Below are positions 3,030 to 55,063 of a DNA stretch of 64,000 bases, one piece after another. The stretch is from assembly GCF_006345805.1 (NCBI RefSeq), contig NC_042997.1, forward strand, positions 42,470,001 to 42,534,000, in the 5' to 3' direction. The first letter of the stretch is position 1; every line of letters starts with the position of its first letter. Below the pieces are notes generated by a model. That model saw only the letters and a program-made list of their open reading frames with translations. It was not told the origin of the DNA and made no database searches. Position numbers and translations under genes: made by a program. This DNA comes from Octopus sinensis (taxonomy: Eukaryota).

Positions 3030-6000
3030 CGTGTAGATTTGTGCTGCCTCCAAGAAGTAAGGTGGAGAGGAGGTTCCGCTAGGTTCCTCACAGACCAAGG
3101 ACACAGGTACAAGATTTTCTGGGCAGGGAACATTGATGGGGTCAGGAGCGTGGGTATACTTCTTATAGAGAAATGGGTTGTCGAGGTAGTCAGAGTATGC
3201 GATAGAATACTTAAGATTAAGTGATACATCATGCGTTAGCAACCATTACCTCTGCTCCTCAGCCGGGACTACCTGATGGACAGAAAGACCATTCTTATAA
3301 CACCCTCTTGCAGACTAGCTTGTTGACGAATGACAAGGACCTTCTCTTTGTGGCTAGTGACTTCAATGGGCATGTTGGACAACATGCAGGGGGCTTCCAT
3401 GCTGTTCATGGAGGATATGGTTTTGGTTCCCACAATGAGGAGGGAACCAGGGAGTTTTGTGATGCAAGTGATGTTATGGTTTCCAATACTAATTTCAGGA
3501 AACCTGCCAGTCACCTTGTCACCTATCATTCTGGCAGACACACTAGCCAAATTGACTACATCCTTGCCAGAAAAAGGGAAAGATGGCTGCTTATTAAATG
3601 CCAAAACATTCCCAGGCGAATAATGTACCCCACAACAGACTAGTAGTCAGCGACTTCAGGATCAGCACTAAATGGATGCCCTGATGACGACCAGCATGGA
3701 GGAGAAGGGTCTGGAAGGTTAAAGATCCTGCAAATGGACAGAGATTTAGAGATGTATTACTTGAAGCCTTCGACGAAATAGAAGGGGACATGATGTGGAA
3801 GACAATTGGAGGGCCACTGACCAGATCTGTGGATAGTGCAAAGTCCCCTCAAGACCCAAGGTAACGTAGTGGTGGAACAATGTTGTTAACAGGGCTATTA
3901 GGGAAAAGAAACAAGCTTGGAAGGACTGGAAGAAGGGTGGTAGCAGGGAATTGTATCAGACTGCCAGAAGGGAAGCTAGGGGAGAGGTTTAACCCTTTAA
4001 TGTTCAGATTATTCAGTCAAGTGTGATGTTTGTTTATTCACATTGTTTTGAATTAATCATGTATTATCTTGTAGTTTAGAGATTTCAGTGATGCTATTTT
4101 TTAGTTTTAGAATGACATGGTAGGGCTGAGGTGAGAGGCAAGATCTGGTCAGTTTCAATATAAATCAGGTTAAATATTTTGGCCGGATATGGCCGGTTTG
4201 AACATTAAAGGGTTAATTAGCCAGAGGGGAAGCAGATAAGACAAAATTTGCCAATGTTCAGCGCTCTGAGGACCAAAGACTTAAGGTATATTTTGTTGCA
4301 AGACAGTATGTAAGAGAGAATCGTGATGTCGTAGGAGAGAAATGTGTCCACATGGATGATGGTTCACTTGCATTAAACAAGGCTACAGAGAGGTTTGGAG
4401 ATGCCACTATGAAAGGTTGCTCAATAAAGTGAATGAATGGGAGAAAGAGAGTCTGCCAAATGTTGACCCATGAGAGGGACCAGCTATCCGAATTGACAGT
4501 ACCTTGGTAGGTAAAGCATTTGAGAGTGTAAAGACAGGGAAAGCCCCCGGTCCACCAGGAATCATCACAGAGATGTTCAAAATACCTGGCAGTGTCGGCT
4601 ATAGCCTAGTCACTCATATAGTTAACCAGGTGATACATGAAGGAGTCATACACAATGACTGGTGTAGCAGCACTACAGTCAACTGCTACAAAGGTAAAGG
4701 TGACGTTTTAGATACAAATAATTACAGAGGTATCAAGTTGTTGGATCAGGTAATGAAGGTCACCGAGAGGGTCGTAGCCCAACTACTTAGGGAGAGAGTC
4801 AGTTTAGATGAGATGCAGTTTGGTGAGAGTTGGCAACAAGTACAGTGAAGAATTCCAAGTAGGGGTAGGGGTTCACCATTGATCAGTCCTCAGCCCCCTC
4901 TTATATTCCTCCAGACAATAACAGAGGAATTCAAGACAGGATGCCCTTGGGAGTTCCTCTATACTGATGACCTTGCTCTAATTGCTGAATCACTATCAGA
5001 ACTAGAGGAAAAGTTTCAGGTGTGGAAGCAAAAATTAGAATGGAAGGGCCTTAGAGTCAACCTAGCTAAAACTAAAGTCTTAATAAGTAGGAAGGCAGAC
5101 AAACCACAAATCCCTTCAGGTAAATGGCCCTGCTCAATCTGTAGAAAAGGCGTAAGTAGAAACTCTATAAGATGCACCCAGTGTAAGTTATGGACACATA
5201 AGAGATGCAGTAATCTCAAAGGGAGGCTAACTGGGAAGATAGTTTTTGTATGTGGCAGATGCTCAGGAGCCATAAACACTGAAAATGTGCAGAGAACAGC
5301 TTCTGTCACATTCCAGGGAGAAAAACTAGAAGTAGTTGATAGCTTCTGTTACCTAGGGGACCAAGTCAGTAGCAGGGGTATATGTTCAGAAAGTGTAGCC
5401 GCTAGAATAAGAATAGCCTGGGCAAAGTTCAGAGAACTCCTACTGGTGACAAAGAGCCTCTCTTGCTCAGAGTAAAAGGTAGACTGTATGACGCATGTAT
5501 GTGAACATTCATGCTACACGGCAATGAAACTTGGGCCATGACTGCTGAGGACATGCGTAAGCTTGCAAGGCATGAAGCCAGTATGTTCCACTAGATGTGT
5601 AATGTCAGTGTGCATACACGACAGAGTGTAAGCACCCTGAGAATAAAATTGGATTTAAGAAGCATCAGATGTGGTGTGCACGAGAGACTACTGCATTGGT
5701 ATGGTCATGTTTTGCAAATGAATGAGGACAGCTGTTTGAAAAAGTGTCACACCTTAGCAGTTGAGGGAACCTGTGGAAGAGGTAGACCCAGGAAAACCTG
5801 GGATGAGGTGAAGCACAACTTTCGAACATTGGGCCTTACTGAGGTAATGACTAGTGACCGGGACCTTTGGAGATATGCTGTGCTTGAGAAGACTCAACAA
5901 GCCAAGTGAGACCATAGCCCATGGCCTATACCAGTGGTTGTAACCAGCCCATTTATGAATACCCCTCATTCATTGCTTGTGAAGACTACTGAGGCAAGTG

Positions 6001-11800: not shown

Positions 11801-13588
11801 GCAGCAGCAGTTTAATAAATTTAGAATAGATATATCCAAAAGGTGCCACTTCCAAGACACTACTAGTTGGTTTGGCACCAGACAGTACAGGCAAACAAAT
11901 TATTTGGACAGCAGAAAAAATACTCCTCTTTCATAATAACCAATGAAAAAAATCTAATACGTCAGGAAAGGGCAGAAGGGATGTAAGAACCTGGAACTAG
12001 TAATCCAACTGAACTGCATTACAAAAGCTGCTGCTGCTGCTATAATCCATTTTCCTGCTTAAGTCAGTGCCACCTGGCAATTGTACTTGTGATTTTTGTA
12101 CAGTTAGAAGTGTGTAATAAGCATATCAGCATACTCAGAGTATGGATTGGTGAAAACATGAACTTGCAAGCTTCACAACTAACAAAGAAGTCAAGATAAG
12201 AATTGAGCAAATATTTTCTAGTACCATTATTCAAAGAAGATATTAACTGCTAACTTAGCATGAATAGCTCAACTGGTAGTTAGTACACTTTCACTAACAC
12301 ACCAGAAAAGTTAGTTAAAAGGAATTGCTTTCCTCTAATCTAAAAAAAAAAAAAGGAAAAAAAAAAAACGAAGATTTGAAGAGATCTCTTAACTAAGCCA
12401 TTCCATTTTACTTGCAAGAGAAAGTTATATAAACAGGATACAAACTATGAAAAGATATCGGGTAAAGAGATTGGTTTTAACAGCAGCTAATAAACTAAGA
12501 AAATAACTTAATATGCAACATCCAGTGTAAAAGATGGATGGAATGGTTAATAAACCAATTTGTAAATGATCTATGCTAAGTGTAGCTCTTGTAGATGCAG
12601 TGATGAAAAACTAGATACAGGAACTTACAAAGTAGAATGAAAGATTATGAAAAATTATGGACACAATTTTCAAAAAAAAACTATCATCATTTATCCAAAA
12701 TGAAGACAAAAATGTTCATTTTTGTTGACTGATTATTTCTGCTTCCAAAATTTTTTCTTTATAATGAATCCAAGTAATTTTTGCCTGTACTGAATTATCT
12801 AGCTTAGCTTAGCATTGTATCTTTTCCTGTTGCTTTGTCAGGTCTATATACAAGTGGAGAAAAATAGATCTCAGTAGCATCAGCATTTTTACAATTGTCA
12901 CTTGAATTTATGACCTAACTCAGTAATAAAAGAAAAAACAAAAATAGAAATCCAATAAGGCAAATACTATGCAATTTTTTTAATGATTTTAATTATACAT
13001 AAGAAAAAGTGCTTTACTCTCCAAGCAATTCTACTAGAGATCTATTTTTATCCAAATTGCAATAATAATTTCATGCAACAATGAGAAAGCACTCTTTTTT
13101 AAAGAAAAAAAATATGTATTTCTGGTTAAATTCTTATACACCCATTCACATGGGAATTTGAGTAAATAAAAAAAATTGTTTTAATGATTACCAATATAAC
13201 ACATCAACATGCTTGATCGATGTGCTGTAAGACTGAATCCATGTGGAAACACTTCAGCAGAGTAAGAGCACACAACTATAGACATTATGTTCACCATGGC
13301 AAAGCCAGGCCATTGAAATAAGCTTTATTGTTAAAAATCTCATCCATTTCAGTGGCAAGAAATCCGGTAATGGTATTGAACATAAACGGTGCATGCAGAA
13401 ATTCAAGTTGAACAATGAGGATATTACTGGCATAAGCCAGAAGAGATACAGTTTATCTAACTATGAAGGGAACAATAGATGTGTAGACTTTAGTTACCGG
13501 CTGATACAGTATCGAAACAATGACAGCTTTCTTCTTGATGTTCAGGACATTAGATATTAGCATAGACAGAACGAGGACAATGATATAC

Positions 13589-13791
13589 CTTGCTTGAGGA
13601 CTTCAAACGGGTTTCCTCTAGTTTCTCATTAACAGGGCCTTCTTTAGGAGAATCAGTCTTTCTTTCAGAGGCCCCAGAACTGCTTGACATACTAGAAGCA
13701 CTGCGCTTCAGAGGAGTATAAACACTCCTAGGAGGCATGTTCTGTTGAGATTGTTGTAATGGAATAGGTGGTGGGCAGCTGTAATCCTTTT
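13589..13791 (-). CDS. PRRC2: PRRC2 coding exon 17 (KKDYSCPPPIPLQQ...KSSSK)
   Basis: ttactattag acceptor, AAG|gtatat donor, 203 nt, phase 1 to 0; ORF 13550..13834. Confidence 0.85.
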
Positions 13792-14961
13792 CTAATAGTA
13801 AAAAAAAAAAAATACATATATACAAAATGGTCATTTAAAACATTTTAAATTCAGAACAATTACAAAAAAATTAAACTTCTCAAATTTTATGAGAGCTATT
13901 ATAATTCCCTTTTGTGGTATACTACCGGTAGGCAGTAATTATTCTAAGATTCTTTTAAAACCTAGTGAAATATGAACAAGATATTACTTTTTTTTTTTTC
14001 TTTTTTTTTAAATTCTCGTTTAAGATCCAATCCAACGTATATTAAGATCTAAGTTATATCCTCATATACAAACTGATTTAAATATATTGCTCCAATGTGC
14101 AGGTAAGCAGTCAATGTATAACAAAGATTTTCTTTAATAAATTTTAGACACATAAGTGGTTTTGTAGTGCTATTCAAATATAGAAGTGATTGCAAAATGG
14201 AACTCCTATCTATCCACTGAATTTTCAATAGCTTGCTTTGTCTTCAATGTAGTTGAAATACATCACCAGATAGAACACTAATACCATTTTAAAACAGTGA
14301 TAATCCAAAATATTTAATATATTCACATCTTGTTTTTCAACAGTGCCAGGACTTAACACTTTGATTTTGGAACCAAACATCTAAATCATTCAAGTAAACA
14401 CACATCTCATGGTTATAATAATTTGGACATTAAAATATAGATTTATGAATCACAAATCATTCAACAAATAAGTACTTATTTTCAGCTGGCCATGCACTCA
14501 AAACCAAAATATGATTTGACCTACACTTTTAATTTTGTACTTAGTAATTAATATATATCTGCAATATGCATACAATTATATATTCCTGGAAAAATTTGGG
14601 ACAATGTCACTTTTCACTGCTAACAAGTCTTATCTTCAAAATATGCTTATGATCAGCCTAAAACCATTTCTGAATCCCCCCAAAAATATGGCCATAGACA
14701 ATGATTATCCTATCTAATATGGCCTTCTTTTTTAAGGATGGGAGGATGTATTTCTAGCAGGATGAAAAATAACAGAGGCTTTATCACCTGCCCAAGAGAA
14801 AAAAAAAAGATTCTTTTATAAATAAATGTTTCATGATTGTAAAATTAAAATGCATTTTAGCATTATCCAACTCACGCTATTACTTCCTATATTGTTTAGG
14901 TTCACTGAACATGTAGAATTCATAGCAAAAGCAAAATGAAATGTAAGAAATTAGAACTCAC

Positions 14962-15341
14962 TTTTATCATCAGGGAAAGATCTGTAAGTGGAAGAGTAGA
15001 GACGCTGATTCCAATGAGGATCAGAATGGTTTTTATCTTGCCTCCAATGAGATGAAGGCTCTGAGGGACTCTTATCTTCTCTTCGCCATTGAGAGTCAAC
15101 TGAATTCTTATCTCTATGCCAGTGAGAAGGTTCAACATGATTTTTATCTTCCCGTCGCCAATGGGGCTCCTGTTGTGACTTCTCTTCTCGTCTCCAGTGA
15201 CTATCAGGTAGAGGTTTTTCTTCTCGCTTCTCAGATTCATGATCAATCAAATGAGAATGGGCATGTGGATGAGGATGTGGCGAAGGATGAACATGAAGGT
15301 GTCTCTCATCTTCTTTGTTTTTCACTGGTTTTTCATCTTCC
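14962..15341 (-). CDS. PRRC2: PRRC2 coding exon 16 (His-rich; HWRREDK-type repeats)
   Basis: tttttag acceptor, AA|gtgagt donor, 380 nt, phase 2 to 1; ORF 14951..15325. Confidence 0.9.
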
Positions 15342-24845: not shown

Positions 24846-26373
24846 CTGATATCCATCACAACTTATTAGATCAGATTTTTCAAACTATTCAAAGATAAAT
24901 AAAATTAAAAACAATTGCAACCAACAATTCATTTGCAATGTTGGGAGAGAAAATTAGATATCACAGACAACTACAGAATTTATTTACTCTCTTCATAAGA
25001 TGTTAAGCTGGAATTCAACAATTGTTGCACTAGACTAAATAATTCAAGTAACTAGCAACTATGTCCAATAAGCAGCAAACTGATACAATGCTAATTTCAC
25101 CAAATATGAATTACTATATGGTTTTTCTAACCATATTCCAAATGCTTTTATGCTTATATTTTTAATTTCTTATATTAGTACAAAAAATATCAACTTCTCA
25201 GCAACTCAAATTATGAAAAAATGATTTACTTAATAGTTAAATCTATCTAAATAAATCTAAGTGATAATCTGCATAATTATAGAAATTGTTTTCAATGTGA
25301 TTTATTGCATAAACAAGCAGTTAAGAAGTCGAGTTTTCTCTGCAACTATGTTATTCCTGTTTTGATCTCACTGCACAGCATCTTGGTAATTTGGTAGATG
25401 GGAACTGTGCTGAAAATGGTTTGTGTAGCGCATGTATGCCTGTGTCAGGTGGTGTGTCAAGCTGTTGTTAATGGAATTTAGCCAGTCAATAAAACAGTAC
25501 AAAACAGAAATGAGTACTAGGTTTGATATTATTGGCTGAAAACCCTTACTTGCAGTTTCCCAAAATGGCTAAGATGTTCATTACAAGATGCTCTAAAATC
25601 AACTAAAATGCAAGTTTTAGCAAATTACAAGAAACTATCAGGGATCTACAGTAGCTAGAGAGTTGTTAAAAAATAAATATTTCATATTAAAATCCATTCT
25701 AACCATAAATATCAAGACAGCTGAATTTTTTTTTTTTTCTTCCTATTTCTAAAATGTTCTGATTGACACAACTTGAACAATAGCAGTGGTACTCACTTCT
25801 ATTCCTGGAATGGGGGGTCTTGGTTGATTAGATCTATAATGTTGAGGGGGGAAAGCCTGACCCCAACTTTCTCTATGAGATGGCCGACTGTGTTCATCCT
25901 TAAAAGCAAACCAGATTTGTGTAGAGTTTCAATAACAATGAACGATCAAATTAAATGAAGGACATGAACCCAGAAAATATACAGTTCAAAACAAACCTTT
26001 AACTGCTAAAATATTTTCATAATGCAAGAAATATATTTTAAACGAAGTAACAACCAAAGAGTTATTGAAAACTTTCTTTTACAACACTTAAAATTATGTC
26101 TGTGCTAAGCTTGAGTTTAATTTGTAAGTTAAATGCTGAAATTCAATAACCTAAACCCAACAATTCAAATCTTGAACAATGTCACAATTTTCAAACAGAA
26201 AATACTTCCAATATGCAATAAATATAGCACAAAGGAAGCAGCAAAACGGTGAAAATGAGGGAGTGGGGAATTAGTTGCAACAGTAGTCATTTCTGGTTTT
26301 TGTAAGATCAATAAAAACAAGGTAAGTTTCTACTTTGAACTACATATAAACTAATCAGGTAAAGTTGATTTGT

Positions 26374-31266: not shown

Positions 31267-34213
31267 TTTAAGTTTTTCATGATTATCTCTGTCATTTTCT
31301 TCCGAGGTAGTTTTACCATCTTCGTGTGTCTCAGTTCGTAAATCCCTGCTATCTCTTAGGTCACGTGCATCTCTGCTTTCAACACGTATATCTCTACTTT
31401 CTCTCATATCTCGGGAATCTAAAATAACCTCTCTTGGTTCCCGGATGTCTCTTGTCTCACTACGAGTATCACATGTTTCCCAAACATCTTGTGAGTCTCC
31501 TCGGGGTTCTCTAGGTTCACGTATGTCTTGAGATTCAACACGTACATCCCTCTGATCACGAATCTCACGGGTTTCAGGGCGCACATCTCTAGCATCACGA
31601 ATGTCTCTCGTTTCTCCGCGCCCCATGTCCCTCGGTTCACGAATATCTCGTGTCTCTCCACGCATGTCTCTGGGTTCTCGAATGTCACGTGGCTCACCAC
31701 GCACCAATTCCCTAGTTTCACGAATGTCTCGAGGCTCATTACGCCCAATGTCTCTTGGTTCAGCACGCACATCTCTCTGCTCACGAAGGTCTCGTGGCTC
31801 AGTACGTACATCCCTTGGTTGGCGAATATCTCGTGGTTCAGCACGCACATCCCTTGGCTGGCGAATGTCTCGTGGTTCAGCACGCATATCTCTTGGCTCA
31901 CGAATGTCACGTGGCTCGGCACGTACATCCCTAGATTCACAAATGTCCCGTGGCTCGGTACGAACATCCCTTTGTTCACGAATGTCTCGTGGTTCGGCAC
32001 GCACATCCCTTGGCTCGTGAATGTCTCGTGGTTCAACACGCACATCCCTTGGCTGGCGAATGTCTCGTGGTTCAGCACGCACATCCCTTGGCTGGCGAAT
32101 GTCTCGTGGTTCAGCACGCACATCCCTTGGCTGGCGAATGTCTCGTGGCTCAGCACGCACATCTCTAGGTTCATGAAGGTCTCGTGGCTCTGTTCGAACA
32201 TCCCGTGGCTCAACACGGACATCCCGTGGCTCACGCATGTCTCTTGGCTCAGCACAGACATCTCTCGGCTCACGAACATCTCGGGATTCAGGACGCACAT
32301 CTCTTGATTCTCGACTATCCCGTGGCTCAGCACGTACATCTCTTGCTTCTAGAATATCTCGTGATTCAGCACGTGCATCCCTTGGCTCACGAATGTCACG
32401 CAGCTCAGTACGCATATCTCTTGGTTCGCGAATATCACGTGGTTCAGTACGCAGATCCCTGGGTTCACGCATGTCACGTGGTTCAGCACGTACATCCCTT
32501 GTTTCGCAAATGTCTCGTGTCTCAGGACGTACATCCCGCTGATCACGAATGTCACGGGGTTCAACACGCACATCACGAATGTCATGTGGTTCCCCACGTA
32601 AGTCGCGTGCTTCGCCACGTACATCTCTTTGCTCACGAATGTCACGTGTTTCACCACGCACGTCTCTCTGTTCTCTAATATCGCGTACTTCACTACGCAC
32701 ATCCCTTTGCTCGCGAATGTCACGTGCTTCACCAAGCACACCTCTTTGCTCCCGAATATCACGAGGTTCATTACGAACATCTCTTGGTTCTCTAATGTCT
32801 CTGGGCTCAGCCCGTACGTCCCTCTGCTCTCTATTGTCATGAGGTTCAGTACGTGCATCTCTCTGTTCCCTGATGTCTCTAGGCTCCACTCGTGCATCTC
32901 TCTGTTCCCTAATATCTCTTGGCTCCACCCGTGCATCCCTCTGTTCCCTCATGTCTCTAGGCTCTCCCCGTGCATCTCTCTGTTCCCTTATGTCTCTAGG
33001 CTCTCCCCGTGCATCTCTCTGTTCCCTCATGTCTCTAGGCTCTCCCCGTGCATCTCTCTGTTCCCTTATGTCTCTTGGTTCAGCACGCACATCATTTCTC
33101 TGCTCACGGACATCTCTTAGTTCACGAATTGCATCTCTTGGTTTCTGAAGGTTCATTGCATCACCACGAGTATCTCGTATATCTCTAGTCTCTCCACGGA
33201 CATCTCTTATTTCACGAGAATCACCACGGATATCCCTGTCTCGTGGTTCAAGACGGATATCTCTTGATCCCATACGCGAGTCTCTGGTAGTTTCAATACG
33301 ACAATCTCTACCATCCAGTCGAATATCTCTAGCTGGTTCATGTCGGGTATCTCTACCTTCAAGTCGAATGTCTCTGGTTGCATCAAGGCGATTATCTCTC
33401 ATATCATGACAGATATCTCTATTTGAATCTAATCTTGAATCTCTGGGTTCAAGACGAATCCCTCTATTTGGTTCAAGGCGTATATCTCTTGGTTCATGAC
33501 GTAAATTCCTTGTTGGTTCAAGTCGTGCATCTCTTGGCTCATGGCGTATGTCACGAGTAGGGTCAAGATGAGTATCTCTTGACTCGTGGCGCATGTCCCT
33601 GGATGGATCAAGACAAGGATCTCGATTTTCATGTCTTATAGCTCTTGGTGTTTCCATGCCATGACGCAGTTCTCGTGGAGATTCAAGAAGAGGATCTCTA
33701 GGTTCATGCCGAATTTCCCTAGAGGATTGAAGACGGCAGTCTCTTGCTTCCATGCGAATATCTCTTGATACACCACGCATTTCTCGTGGTTCATGGCGAA
33801 TGTCTCTGGGTTCAATATGAATATCGCGATTTTCACCGCTTATATCCCTATTTTCACGCATGTCTCTAGCTTCAAAACGAATTTCTCTAGGTTTTCCACG
33901 CCCATCTCTAGTTTCACGAATGTGATCTAGATTAATGTCCCTAGGTTCACCACGCATATCGCGGCGTATGTCTCTAGGTTCAGCACGTACTTCCCTATTT
34001 TCATGGCGAATATCCCTTGGTTCACCACGAATTTCTCGTGGATCATGACGAATGTCCCTTGGTTCACCACGTGTTTCCCGTGGATCATGGCGAGCATCTC
34101 GATTCTCAGCACGTGTTTCACGTGGATCTCTATGTTCTCTTGCTTCACGCAAGTTTCCTCCTTCAGTACGTATTTCCCTTGCTTCACGGTGTTTTTCCCG
34201 TTTCTCTTCATTT
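31267..34213 (-). CDS. PRRC2: PRRC2 coding exon 9: 2,947-nt exon of Arg/Asp/Glu mixed-charge tandem repeats (~982 aa)
   Basis: tttcttttacag acceptor at 34214, AAA|gtaagt donor at 31266; stop-free in the frame required by exon 8 (phase 2 to 0); coincides with ORF 31063..34152. Confidence 0.88.
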
Positions 34214-35837: not shown

Positions 35838-35885
35838 CTTTCATGTTTCTCACCCTCTTCATCATCACTGAAGACCAGCTTTTCA
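35838..35885 (-). CDS. PRRC2: PRRC2 coding exon 8, 48-nt microexon (SEKLVFSDDEEGEKHE)
   Basis: tttcatttag acceptor, AAG|gtatgt donor; completes the conserved DYxEKLxFSDDEE motif begun in exon 7; phase 2 to 2. Confidence 0.92.
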
Positions 35886-36183: not shown

Positions 36184-37768
36184 AGAAAAGATATGAAAAT
36201 ATTAAGCTAACAAACAACTTGAACTGAATCACTGATAGGCCTGAGTATATTTCCATAAGGTTTAAGATTTATCAGGTTCATAGATTCCAAATAGTAGATG
36301 AGAGAGATGCAATTCCATAAAGCACAAATGCCAACATGGAGACAATTCAAAATATTTTAAATTGTTTAAACTAGTTAAATATATTTACAATTCAGTGTAA
36401 AAAGTTATTTTCTTTGGCAAAATTTCTGTATTTTCAAACCAAAGGTTATTTGAAATTATATCTACATTTCTTGTGTGGTCCCTAAGACAACACCCAAGAT
36501 CCTTTTCAGGCTTCTAAGATGACATGAAGCTGTCCTCAAACAGGACCTGACACTGAATGCTTGAAGCAGCTGACTCCACTAAAAGGCACTCAATAACCAG
36601 GTGGTGATGTTCCATCATTTTCCTTTTTCTCCACCCCACTCTTAGAAATACGTTAATCTATGTACAACTACATTACCTATAAGGTTTGACTAAGAGATTT
36701 GAATATAGTGAACTGAATTTTACTTAACAGATTATTCAATTGTTTCAGACTGATGTAAACAGTCAACCACAAGAACTGGACACCAGAAAAGAGCTCCAAA
36801 ATCAAAAACTGTTGTGTGTTTAATTTTTGGTAGTCTATCACTTCTTTCATTAGACTACCATTTGTATACTAATAATCACTTCTAATATAGCCCTAAAGAT
36901 TCATGAGGAAAGAGAGTCTATGGTAAATTAAATCAACCCTAGTACTCAACTGGTTCTTATTTTATCCTTCTACACATCATCCAAGAAGAATGATAGGCAA
37001 TACATTTTTCAAAGCAAGATTTGAACTCAACATATAGACATCATATGCAAGAAATTTTTGTCAGCATTGATAAATGAAAACTAATTTAGAATTTTCAAGG
37101 AGGAGCCCATTAAACAGTATTATATTTCTCATAAAGCATCAATGGTCACAAAATGTCTTCCAGAAACCAGAAACCAAATCTTCCTCAAAGCACACCCACC
37201 ATAAAATTTTTTTACAATGCAACCTAATGTTTGGATTGCAGGTCTGTTTAATGCCAGCTTTATTCAATCTAATAAAAAACTGATGATAAATTCAATATTT
37301 CTTAAGGTTTTGATTCTGCTTATTTAATAATTCCAGACTACAAAGGTCCACTGATAGACTTCTTGTTATATTTAGTCGTGTCCAATAAATTGCAGTCTAC
37401 AGATAACTCAGATAACGTTTTTCTCTTTTGCTGGAAACTCACTTAGCTATTCAATTAATGTACATTAAACAGATTTATTGGAAAAAATACTTTTTCATTT
37501 GGTTTAACTTGACCAAGAAAACAATACTTTTTGGAATTTCAAATTCAGAAAAATAAATTGTTCACAGTCAGCTCTTTGTAGCTGACGACAGCCACCACCA
37601 CCACCCACTCCATTAACACCTGAGCAACTAACTATTACAGTTCTCAGTTATATATGTATACACATGTGAGTGATTATTGGCAAAACCTATAGAAACTCCG
37701 GAGTTTTGCAAGTAGAATTAAATGTGCAAACGTAATGGCAGTATCAGAATAACCTCAAAAGATGTTAC

Positions 37769-37948
37769 CTGTAGTCTATCTCCCCTTGAGCTCCAGCCCA
37801 ACCACCATCAGTTGGGTCATTACGCAAAATTTCATCAAATTCTTTGAGATCACGATCTTTAATAATAGCAGGTCGTTTGTAGTTCTCATTGTCAGTTTCA
37901 TTTGCTGGCCTTTGTGCTTGAACATTTGGAGGGGGAACTCTCGGGAAC
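37769..37948 (-). CDS. PRRC2: PRRC2 coding exon 7 (RFPRVPPP...RPAIIKDRDLKEFDEILRNDPTDGGWAGAQGEIDY)
   Basis: ttttgcag acceptor, CAG|gtaaca donor, 180 nt, phase 2 to 2; conserved family motif. Confidence 0.93.
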
Positions 37949-38820
37949 CTGCAAAAAAAACAAGTTGAATTTTGTTCCAGTTAAATCTGATTGCAAGCCA
38001 AGCAGCTTTTGGACTAAGAAAATGGCAGCCATTCTTAGAGTCAAGAGGTTGCTTGGCTTTTAGAACAAATAAAAACCAATAAATTTTCTAAGACAACTTT
38101 ATTATCAAAGCATATTTAATATTTTCTAAACAATCACTTTCTTGCCTATTATTTACAAGGAATGTCAAAAACAGACAAGCCTCAAAAATAATTAAGAGGC
38201 ATGTACTTAAAATTTACTAGACAAATTGATTTCTAGCACTTTATTTCAAAATTTAGGAAAATTGATGTTTTTGGATATAATCTTAGTTGTCTTAACTGTA
38301 ATAGAAAAATTTTACTTATCACAAAAAAACTGCCCATGGTTTTATGTAAAGCAAGAAAGATAATAATGAAATTTTTTTAAGTAGCTGCTTCTATAACATC
38401 ACGACAATTTCACTGTAATGTAGCGAGAGTACTGTGGCCTCTATACACAAAAGCTACTATGGTATTTTGCAAAGAGGAAAAACTTCATTTACAGTTACCT
38501 AGAATTTCTAATTTCCACCTTACAATGGAATTTACTTACAGCACCTCTAATATTTTTCATCAACTTACTTGATATTTGTTTACTGCCCTCTGTTGAGCTT
38601 AATCACTATACACTCCCCTTTCTACCTACCGTATTCAACTTGCACTCAACTTATAGCACCTCCCACTAGTTTCTATTTTATTTTTAACTCTTTTATTCCA
38701 CTTCAATTGGCAATTTATGCAAGGTGACAAAATTAAGTTTCTGTTGGAAGGGCAAGAGCATAAAACAATCTTTCCACACTATAAGTATCACACTGAATTC
38801 TACAAACTCAGAGATACCTA

Positions 38821-45556: not shown

Positions 45557-45671
45557 CTGTTGATTTCTGTGTCTCAACGCTCTTTCCTTTGTATATATTA
45601 TTTATGTTAATAGATGTAAATTTTCCCTTTCCTTTCTCCCCTTTATTACCTAGCCCCGAGAGTGAGGACAT
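45557..45671 (-). CDS. PRRC2: PRRC2 coding exon 1 (MSSLSGLGNKGEKGKGKFTSININNIYKGKSVETQKST); exon incl. UTR 45557-45732
   Basis: ATG at 45671 in caagATG context; acceptor tttctttcag at 45733; donor AG|gtaagt; 115 nt, ends phase 1. Confidence 0.9.
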
Positions 45672-53361: not shown

Positions 53362-55063
53362 AGGTGAGGGTTGGCGACGAGTACAGTGAAGAATTCTGAG
53401 TAGAGATAGGGGTCCACCAAGGTTCAGTCTTCAGCCCCCTCCTATTTATAATAGTTCTCCAGGCAATAACGGAGGAATTCAAGACAGGATACCCCTGGGA
53501 GCTCCTCTATGCTGATGACCATGCTCTAATTGCTGAGTCACTATCAGAACTAGAGGAGAAGTTTCAGGTGTGGAAGCAAGGATTTGAATCGAAATGCCTT
53601 AGAGTTAACCTAGCTAAAACCAAAGTCCTAATAAGTAGGAAGGTAGACAAACCACAAACCCCTTCAGGTAGATGGCCCTGCTCGATCTGTAGAAAAGGCA
53701 TAGGCAGAAACTCTATAAGATGTACCCAGTGTAAGCTATGGACACATAAGAGGTGCAGCAATATCAAAGGAAGGCTAACTGGGAAGATAGTTTTTGTATG
53801 TGGCAGATGCTCAGGAGCAATAAACACTGAAAATGTGCAGAGAACAACTTCCATCACTTTCCAGGGAGAAAAATAGAAGACAAAGTCAATAGTGGGAGCA
53901 GGTGTGCTGAAAGTGTAACTGCTAGAATAAGAATAGCCAGGGCAAAATTCAGAAAGCACTTACCTCTGCTGGTGACAAAGGGCCTCTCGCTCAGAGTAAA
54001 AGGCAGACTGTATAACGCATGTGTACGAACAGCCATGCTATATGGCAGTGAAATATGGGCTGTGACTGCTGAGGACATGCGTAAGCTCACAAGGAATGAA
54101 GCCAGTATGCTCCAATGGATGTGTAATGTCAGTGTACATACTCGATAGAGTGTAAGTACCCTGAGAGAAAAGTTGGACCTAAGAAGCTTCAGTTGTGGTG
54201 TGCAAGAGAGAAGATAGCTGTGTGAAAAAGTGCCACACCTTAGCTGTTGAGGGAATCTGTGAAAGAAGTAGACCCAGGAAAACCTGATCTTCAAACATTA
54301 GGCCTCACCGAGGCAATGACTAGTGACTGAGACCTTTGGAAATATGATGTGCGTAAGAAGACCCGGCAGAACAAGTGAGATCATAACCCATGACCTTTAC
54401 CAGGATGTAGCCAGCCCACTCATGCATACCTTTCCTTCTTTGGACACAAAACTCTGCTTACGAAGACTGTTGAGGCAAGTGAAATCAAAACTGAATTCGA
54501 AATCAAACCAAATTCGTCGACTGCCACCCATGCCAACCTCCCTTCACTGGACACTAAACTCTGCTTGCGAAGACCTGTTGGGGCAAGTGAAATCAAAATT
54601 GAACCAAATTCGATGACTAGCACCCATACCAGTGGAGTGCTAACAGCTCCATCTGAGTGGGATCACTGCCAGAGCAGCCGTCTGGCACGTAAAGAGCACC
54701 AGTTGAGCGTGATCATTGTCAGTGTCACCTCACTGGTACTTGTGCCGGTGGCATGTGAACAAAACATTCGAGCGAGGTCATTGCCAGTGCTGCTGGACTG
54801 ACTCCTGTGCAGGTGGCACGTAAAAAACACCATTTTCGAGCGTGGCCGTTGCCAGTACCGCCAGACTGGCCCTCGTGCCGGTGGCACATTATAAGTACCC
54901 ACTACACTCTTTGAGTGGTTGGTGTTAGGAAAGGCATCCAGCTGTAGAAACTCTGCCAGATCTGATTGAAGCCTGCGCAGCCATCTGGTTCGCCAGTCCT
55001 CAGTCAAATCGTCCAACCCATGCTAGCATGGAGAACGGACGTTAAACGATGATGATGATGATA
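53362..55063 (+). mobile_element. 5'-truncated decayed RTE LINE, same family as 3030-6620
   Basis: Starts KVRVGDEYSEEF..GVHQGSVFSPLLF..ELLYADD, then PHD-like finger, hairpin-array 3' UTR and (GAT)n tail. Confidence 0.92.

Follow-up and report, generated by a model that had tools for sequence, protein, structure and literature searches.

We analysed a 64,000-nucleotide stretch of the Octopus sinensis genome (NCBI RefSeq assembly GCF_006345805.1, contig NC_042997.1, positions 42,470,001 to 42,534,000 of the forward strand), referred to below as the window, to which all positions given here refer. A gene of the PRRC2/BAT2 family runs on the minus strand from an ATG at 45671 to beyond the start of the window. 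Its ninth exon encodes an array of Arg/Asp/Glu mixed-charge repeats 982 codons long, which is an in-place, 7- to 20-fold expansion of a short exon, with turnover still continuing.

A PRRC2/BAT2-family gene with an enlarged exon 9

Exons were located by tblastn with a PRRC2C query sequence, which served for locating only, and by reading all six frames. The joined N-terminal exons match BAT2_N (Pfam PF07001), a domain carried by 107 homologues, with E=1.3e-41 and a score of 143.6 bits where the cutoff is 25, which bears out the family assignment made in an earlier note on this DNA that was drawn up from the letters alone. Four PRRC2 marker elements also follow one another on the minus strand in the expected order: the DY(S/T)EKLxFSD(D/E)E motif at 37.8/35.9 kb, the W(R/K)xRRRQ...ER(A/T)RQRREEEER helix at 23.8 kb, the PPRFQ(K/R)Q box at 21.8 kb and the EEWETASESSD box at 1.4 kb. 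The gene is a member of the PRRC2/BAT2 protein family.

A full HMMER scan led, by way of an open reading frame (ORF) 84% identical over the coiled-coil exon (P0118), to a second locus on a 359-kb contig (ENA ERZ21867824), here called L005. All of the flanking exons are present there in the same order, at 72-93% nucleotide identity, and the introns cannot be aligned. The exons that matter for the array are listed here, together with the two parts into which exon 9 can be divided.

45557..45671, minus strand: first coding exon, with the ATG, MSSLSGLGNKGEKGKGKFTSININNIYKGKSVETQKST and the start of BAT2_N; placed by sequence and splice context and by Pfam
37769..37959, minus strand: exon 7, 3' end ...DGGWAGAQGEIDY plus AG, in phase 2; 5' boundary placed only approximately
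35838..35885, minus strand: exon 8, 48 nucleotides (nt), coding for (S)EKLVFSDDEEGEKHE plus AG; holds the conserved motif that precedes the array
31267..34213, minus strand: exon 9, 2947 nt (1 base plus 982 codons), Arg/Asp/Glu mixed-charge repeats
33193..34212, minus strand: older, degenerate N-terminal third of exon 9 (amino acids (aa) 1 to ~340), 14-15-residue units of RDxRHEP/RDxRLEP type, colinear with L005
31783..33105, minus strand: young amplified core of exon 9 (aa ~370-810), 13-residue RDIREQ/RDARGEP plus RDIRQP/RDVRAEP units with 78- and 117-bp higher-order periods
25797..25898, minus strand: exon 10, 102 nt, phase 0-0, DEHSRPSHRESWGQAFPPQHYRSNQPRPPIPGIE; AG/GT sites at the same places in L005
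23935..24027, minus strand: exon 11, 93 nt, phase 0-0, RGWNLQMAYEYMGQRPPYPAFRMGPPHPPGQ; AG/GT sites, conserved in L005
23608..23835, minus strand: exon 12, where the PRRC2 coiled-coil region starts with its first helix; aa identity to L005 is 82%

The exon 8 motif recurs in at least 20 PRRC2 homologues. The earlier note had put the array between the DYSEKLVFSDDEE motif and the coiled-coil helix, and exon 9 does lie between the two; it is not adjacent to the helix, however, as exons 10 and 11, which that note missed, intervene. These two exons leave the phase argument given below unchanged.

Exon 9 is coding

Exon 9 opens at an acceptor at 34213 (cttttctttttcttttacag|AAATGA) with 13 pyrimidines in 14 positions, and closes at 31267 with a donor (CTTAAA|gtaagtac) that is the only one to score at least 8/9 within the exon and the 300 nt beyond it. 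The AG at the end of exon 8 and the initial A of exon 9 together form an Arg codon, and exon 9 ends in phase 0. Translation from 34212 to 31267 runs through 982 codons without a stop, as against 16, 148, 17, 16 and 29 stops in the five alternative frames; on base composition alone, such an open frame would be expected with a probability of ~1e-24. The product spliced from exon 7 to exon 12 is likewise open over its 1145 aa, in keeping with the earlier note's description of a stop-free exon of about 980 aa in phase with both of its neighbours. The length had also been given as 3n+1, so that plain skipping would shift the frame. Indeed, it is 3 x 982 + 1 nt, and skipping leads to a stop after 54 codons; because the frame is shifted in this way, the long isoform must include exon 9. 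ORFs on the plus strand across the array (up to 259 aa) were set aside as by-products of the repeat, in frames that carry 16-29 stops.

The differences among the repeat units carry a coding signature. When codons were compared with the codon 39 nt downstream (368 codons), mismatches numbered 55, 29 and 129 at positions 1, 2 and 3, respectively, and the ratio of synonymous to non-synonymous differences between units was 95:78 in frame versus 25:149 and 14:166 in the two wrong frames. The array has the features of a coding tandem repeat under selection: its periods are multiples of three, one frame alone is open, and third-position and synonymous changes are in excess. The exon is also kept at L005, where it measures 2035 nt (1 base plus 678 codons) in the same phase, starts with NEEK and ends in ...NQEKLK|gt; its product has 28% Arg and a net charge of -2. 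Given that the codon-position and synonymous pattern, the splice sites and the retention of the exon at the second locus are three independent lines of evidence, the interval 34213-31267 is a genuine internal coding exon of this PRRC2/BAT2-family gene, and it is under selection.

These observations also bear on the possibility that the array is an intronic, non-coding minisatellite whose open frame is due to chance, or that its length was inflated by an assembly artefact. It is indeed trivial for an array of stop-free units to remain open; blocks at least 93% identical (aa ~380-430 and 680-800), in which copy number is hard to assemble, account for about 250 residues; and public protein searches gave no annotated protein with exon 9. 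Yet just one frame in six stays free of stops through diverged units whose periods are 39, 42 and 45 bp, the codon-position signature indicates coding constraint, and the splice sites coincide with the two ends of that frame. Between most units similarity is no more than 65-85%, a divergence too great for an assembler to collapse or duplicate them, the orthologous exon is kept both in L005 and in a further contig described below (L006), and L005 independently shows an array of 678 residues. We find either form of this explanation scarcely credible.

The searches for the exon in expressed or annotated sequence were as follows. A junction-spanning query (exons 7 and 8 with the start of exon 9, and the end of exon 9 with exons 10 to 12) matched no spliced transcript contigs, and exons 8, 9 and 12 joined and compared with a set of 5.8 billion proteins matched only a Chromera repeat protein and a DnaA. 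The window's 1029-aa ORF, looked up as an exact sequence, had no entry. No annotated protein with exon 9 came from the full HMMER scan; as the 740-aa L005 ORF that is on record went unlisted too, this absence is uninformative, and bias filtering of low-complexity matches is the likely explanation of what the scan missed. A scan of JGI (Joint Genome Institute) metagenome contigs returned only three matches, all distant and all to the coiled-coil exon. The contigs behind P0136, P0137, P0156 and P0240 are 1-3.5 kb long, not enough to show exon 9.

A different reading accepts the exon as coding and supposes that its use is regulated, the array being removed in some tissues through alternative sites (as an exitron), or exon 9 being skipped to yield a short, frameshifted isoform with BAT2_N only. 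Vertebrate short isoforms annotated as ending just after the SDDEE motif (P0007, P0008, P0014 and P0016; 353-366 aa) would fit such a scheme, as would a 387-aa homologue (P0003) that ends by read-through right after ...EIDY and one in-frame acceptor candidate inside the exon, at 33718. This candidate (tcaatcctctag|G, minus strand), which would drop the first 165 codons, is probably unused: its AGG is CGG in L005, and thus the site is not conserved. No other strong donor or acceptor lies inside exon 9, its sense strand is 61% purine and so has no polypyrimidine tracts, and the stop that follows skipping comes after just 54 codons. Regulated use of the array is, in our estimate, quite improbable.

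Read-through of the exon 7 donor in the window (37760-37771, minus strand) gives ...EIDYR and then an immediate stop, and P0003 and P0107 likewise end by read-through just past EIDYR. A short isoform with BAT2_N only may be a conserved option of the family.

The array is a neutral, Arg-rich, well-mixed repeat

Among its 982 residues the exon 9 product has 261 Arg (26.6%), 143 Asp (14.6%), 133 Glu (13.5%) and 77 Pro (7.8%), with only 7 Lys (0.7%), giving a charged fraction of 0.55 and a net charge of -8. The dominant unit is 13 residues (39 bp) long, in which heptamers, RD[IVMLA]R-x-EP (32 matches), and hexamers, RD[IVM]R-[EQD]-[PQ] (29 matches), alternate, and the product holds 122 RD dipeptides and 150 R[DE]xR motifs. 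Tandem Repeats Finder reports period-39 arrays of 11.9 copies at 84% identity, 15 at 69% and 5.7 at 92%, together with higher-order periods of 78, 117, 138 and 177 bp. The repeat had been described less exactly before: the pattern RD[IV]R[EQHL]xEP, taken literally, has no match, and DIREQRDARGEPR, put forward as the commonest unit, occurs only twice, the commonest 13-mer being RAEPRDIRQPRDV with five occurrences.

Positive and negative charges alternate almost perfectly. The Das-Pappu patterning parameter kappa, calculated with our own implementation, is ~0.02 versus 0.15 after shuffling, and no shuffled sequence comes close. The product has no match in Pfam. A single-sequence AlphaFold2 model of aa 361-620 has a predicted local distance difference test score (pLDDT) of 50, a predicted template modelling score (pTM) of 0.12 and no secondary structure save one 7-residue helix, which fits a disordered product.

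Two other structural classes were considered and rejected. A single alpha-helix or coiled coil calls for a long unbroken helix free of Pro, but Pro stands every 6-13 residues and the AlphaFold2 model has a single 7-residue helix in 260 residues; for an RS domain, Ser is at 2.6% and Arg at 26.6%, against a criterion of Ser plus Arg of at least 0.6 and a Ser/Arg ratio near 1.

At the nucleotide level, 60% of the Arg codons are CGN, and the exon holds 32 CGA codons and no TGA. The CpG observed/expected ratio is 1.05 in exon 9 versus 0.45 for the window. The Cys and His variants seen in otherwise regular units (RDIC, RDVC, RDIH, RDLH, EPHD) are the expected outcome of CpG deamination in CGT.

An ancestral short exon expanded in place

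Short counterparts of exon 9 occur in other PRRC2 genes. In a second ENA contig (L006, reached via P0130) the corresponding position is occupied by an exon of 1 base plus 95 codons (DRDMRDKGRGHPPDEKRERMDRNRDPRDRRGDH...), with a phase 0 end and with the downstream segments of the window gene after it. At the exon 9 position of a further locus (L009) there are ~48 matching residues, and 77 in a continuous 612-aa ORF (P0048). These three segments have 25-29% Arg and a net charge per residue within +/-0.04, and sequence related to exons 10 and 11 is present in all three cases. PRRC2C of the spider Trichonephila clavata (P0046) has a weaker version of ~99 aa with 16% Arg.

Similar to exon 9, the short invertebrate exons come directly after ...LVFSDDE(E/D) and run on into ...RESW..PPQ(H)Y... 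and ...FRMGP... segments, and the L006 exon has the same intron phase (1 base plus n codons, with a phase 0 end). Unlike exon 9, they are 10-20 times shorter, lack a regular 13-residue periodicity and have more Asp than Glu, and in P0048 prolines are fewer. Vertebrate PRRC2 proteins have between the same motifs a spacer of ~105-115 weakly charged residues (in P0005, 108 aa with 4% Arg and a charged fraction of 0.26), close to the ~100 aa that the earlier note had given. That note was also right to call the array enlarged, exon 9 being far longer than in the other invertebrates sampled. It had further spoken of a domain 'inserted' into, or 'grafted' onto, the protein, a description contradicted by the same-position short exon in L006, the matching segments in L009 and P0048, and the composition that all of them share. 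Given that a short charged exon of like composition stands at the same position elsewhere, the exon was amplified in place. On sequence grounds, exon 9 can be shown to descend from the ~50-100-residue, Arg-rich, charge-neutral exon of other invertebrate PRRC2 genes.

The comparison with L005 resolves the expansion into two phases. Between the two loci dS is about 1 (estimates of about 0.4-1.9), and over the 306 alignable codons of exon 9 dN/dS (the ratio of non-synonymous to synonymous divergence) is 0.18; an island, EPREMRGVSRDIR.EARDCRL.SSR.IRHEPR, is conserved in the old N-terminal third. Within the first ~340 residues, 60-nt segments are at least as similar to the colinear L005 positions as to paralogous units. 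In residues 370-810, by contrast, paralogous 60-nt segments are 83-98% identical, versus 65-80% to any L005 segment. From this pattern it follows that the old part predates the split of the loci and that the core was amplified or homogenised separately later.

Turnover of this kind leads to the main rival explanation, namely that the array is a tolerated passenger: a product of slippage or unequal crossover in a disordered linker, kept open and charge-balanced only to spare an essential protein, so that length was gained without new function. Copy number and unit types do differ strongly between the loci, with the core homogenised within each and devoid of positional conservation. Unrelated proteins have acquired similar xPRDxRDVRG arrays (P0001 of Chromera, the BTB zinc-finger protein P0194 and others), and vertebrates manage without a charged spacer at the exon 9 position. 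What a passenger accounts for less readily is the low dN/dS of the old part, the strong third-position excess in the differences between units, and the presence of 32 CGA codons without a single TGA. Composition is also held at ~27% Arg, less than 1% Lys and a net charge of ~0 in versions of 48, 77, 95, 678 and 982 residues, and an RD expansion of like composition arose independently in a lungfish PRRC2C. We therefore regard the passenger explanation as a serious competitor that is nevertheless rather unlikely to be correct.

Origin and proposed function

The explanation that we favour, and hold to be fairly probable as a whole, combines a real coding exon, its expansion in place, and a mechanism in which the product acts both in condensates and as a tether. 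The sequence comparisons show that an exon of ~50-100 residues was enlarged to 982 by repeated tandem duplication of 39-bp units and of their 78- and 117-bp multiples, the old N-terminal third being common to both loci and the central two-thirds amplified or homogenised recently, and separately, in each lineage. Selection has acted throughout to maintain the open frame, ~27% Arg, very little Lys and an overall charge close to zero. The predicted product is an intrinsically disordered, well-mixed polyampholyte of ~1000 residues with ~260 Arg, flanked by the BAT2_N region on one side and, on the other, by the helix that opens what, as in human PRRC2C, would be the eIF3/eIF4G2-binding region; the human protein binds eIF3 and eIF4G2 through its coiled-coil region (bioRxiv 10.64898/2026.02.24.707808). 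Two roles appear the most likely. The array may be a high-valency Arg cohesive module, whose guanidinium-carboxylate and guanidinium-RNA contacts would raise partitioning into ribonucleoprotein (RNP) assemblies, and it may be a long flexible tether between two conserved parts of the protein.

Several points weigh against this explanation. PRRC2 proteins are mainly cytoplasmic, while the precedent for condensation of such repeats comes from nuclear speckles. The single-sequence AlphaFold2 model is weak evidence of disorder, inclusion of exon 9 in mRNA is predicted from sequence logic and conservation, and L005 could be a paralogue rather than an orthologue. The turnover in array length, 678 versus 982 residues, would also be expected of a repeat that is merely tolerated. 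Greig et al. define a mixed-charge domain by a charged fraction no lower than 0.7, together with a charge ratio of 1:1 +/- 0.3, in a 60-residue window; over the 923 such windows of the exon 9 product the charged fraction has a median of 0.57 and a maximum of 0.63, none reaching 0.7, so the U1-70K/LUC7-type mixed-charge class to which the array had at first been assigned does not formally include it. Finally, one report (PMC9324279) describes an alternating R/D peptide that by itself did not phase-separate in vitro, and the charges of exon 9 alternate very strictly.

A wider proposal, which we offer as speculation and think unlikely to hold, is the following. A neutral Arg polyampholyte of fixed composition (~27% Arg, net charge 0) might serve PRRC2 proteins as a selectable 'valency dial', its length tuning the engagement of the initiation factor with RNP condensates or with the 43S/48S initiation complex. 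Amplification to 300-1000 residues would have taken place independently in two or more animal lineages, in the window gene before the eIF3-binding helix and in the lungfish before the RG box, and the segment would still be expanding in the window lineage. Were this so, no larger natural Arg/acid mixed-charge array than that of exon 9 would have been described in a core translation factor. Stress granules contain PRRC2 proteins, which promote leaky scanning and bind eIF3 (PMC10123092; bioRxiv 10.64898/2026.02.24.707808), and Arg-rich mixed-charge sequences are among the better-understood condensate 'stickers', with an effect that scales with length. One orthologous exon provides a natural length series of ~48, 77, 95, 678 and 982 residues at constant composition, which, with the independent lungfish expansion, makes a ready-made test of neutral-polyampholyte valency in a translation factor. 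The exon also illustrates how selection on bulk features (an open frame, Arg over Lys, zero net charge) can be visible in a fast-evolving repeat. Lineage-specific low-complexity expansions are common in disordered proteins, and any new function in this case is a prediction.

Other features of the window

The same gene has a second mixed-charge repeat, HWRRE(E/D)K...SHWR(Q/R)DK, in an exon at 14951-15325 (minus strand), with 73% aa identity in L005. Just downstream of the exon at 13553-13810, ~300 nt of intron (13253-13553, minus strand) are ~87% identical to L005, where the other introns are unalignable; this stretch may be a conserved splicing-regulatory element or an alternative 3' end. Two copies of one retroelement reading frame (...LRVNLAKTKVLISRK...CSICRKG...RCTQCKLWTHKRCS...) lie on the plus strand, at 3221-5909 in an intron of the gene and at 53568-54300 upstream of it.

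Comparison with mixed-charge domains and other RD arrays

In the literature searched, PRRC2 is not linked with mixed-charge domains, and PRRC2 and cephalopods occur together in a single paper, in which PRRC2 is only a table entry. Repeats of the exon 9 kind are found in several other proteins. Convergent PRDxRDVRG arrays occur in proteins unrelated to PRRC2, among them Chromera velia A0A0G4I5Z7 (P0001), P0134, P0215, P0258 and the BTB zinc-finger protein P0194. Their 6-7-residue units are nearly identical to those of exon 9 (for example, DPRDSRDVRG in P0001), but these proteins have no BAT2_N and are of unrelated architecture. The likeness is one of composition and motif and not of descent, with several convergent origins.

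Within the family, PRRC2C of the lungfish Protopterus annectens (XP_043942694.1; P0144) has an RD repeat block of 302 residues at aa 1024-1325, with 26% Arg, a net charge per residue of 0.000 and 47 RD dipeptides. The repeats are of the same kind as in exon 9 (RDIRD, SRDIREPRD, RDARENRD), with Ser and Asn in place of Pro. Unlike exon 9, the block stands just before the DQGYRGRGRG box and not before the coiled coil, and because of this different place in the protein it must have arisen independently.

The closest functional precedent is that of the Arg-rich mixed-charge domains (R-MCDs). Condensation of RD repeats and their entry into nuclear speckles depend on repeat length and on Arg, which Lys does not replace (bioRxiv 10.1101/771592). 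Exon 9 resembles these domains in its Arg:(Asp/Glu) ratio of ~1:1, with a positive-to-negative charge ratio within 0.7-1.3 in 98.7% of the 60-residue windows (median 1.0), and in the near absence of Lys (261 Arg versus 7 Lys). It is also of low complexity, with predicted disorder and high valency; in the precedent, condensation scales with length. It differs in the fixed hydrophobic residue (Ile or Val) and Pro of every unit, in its CGN-rich Arg codons (as opposed to the GA-rich bias described for vertebrate R-MCDs), and in its host, a cytoplasmic translation factor where those of mixed-charge domains are splicing factors. By analogy, the array may act like an Arg-rich mixed-charge region while lying outside the formal definition. 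Its 982 residues make it several times the length of the published R-MCD fragments (~195-285 aa).

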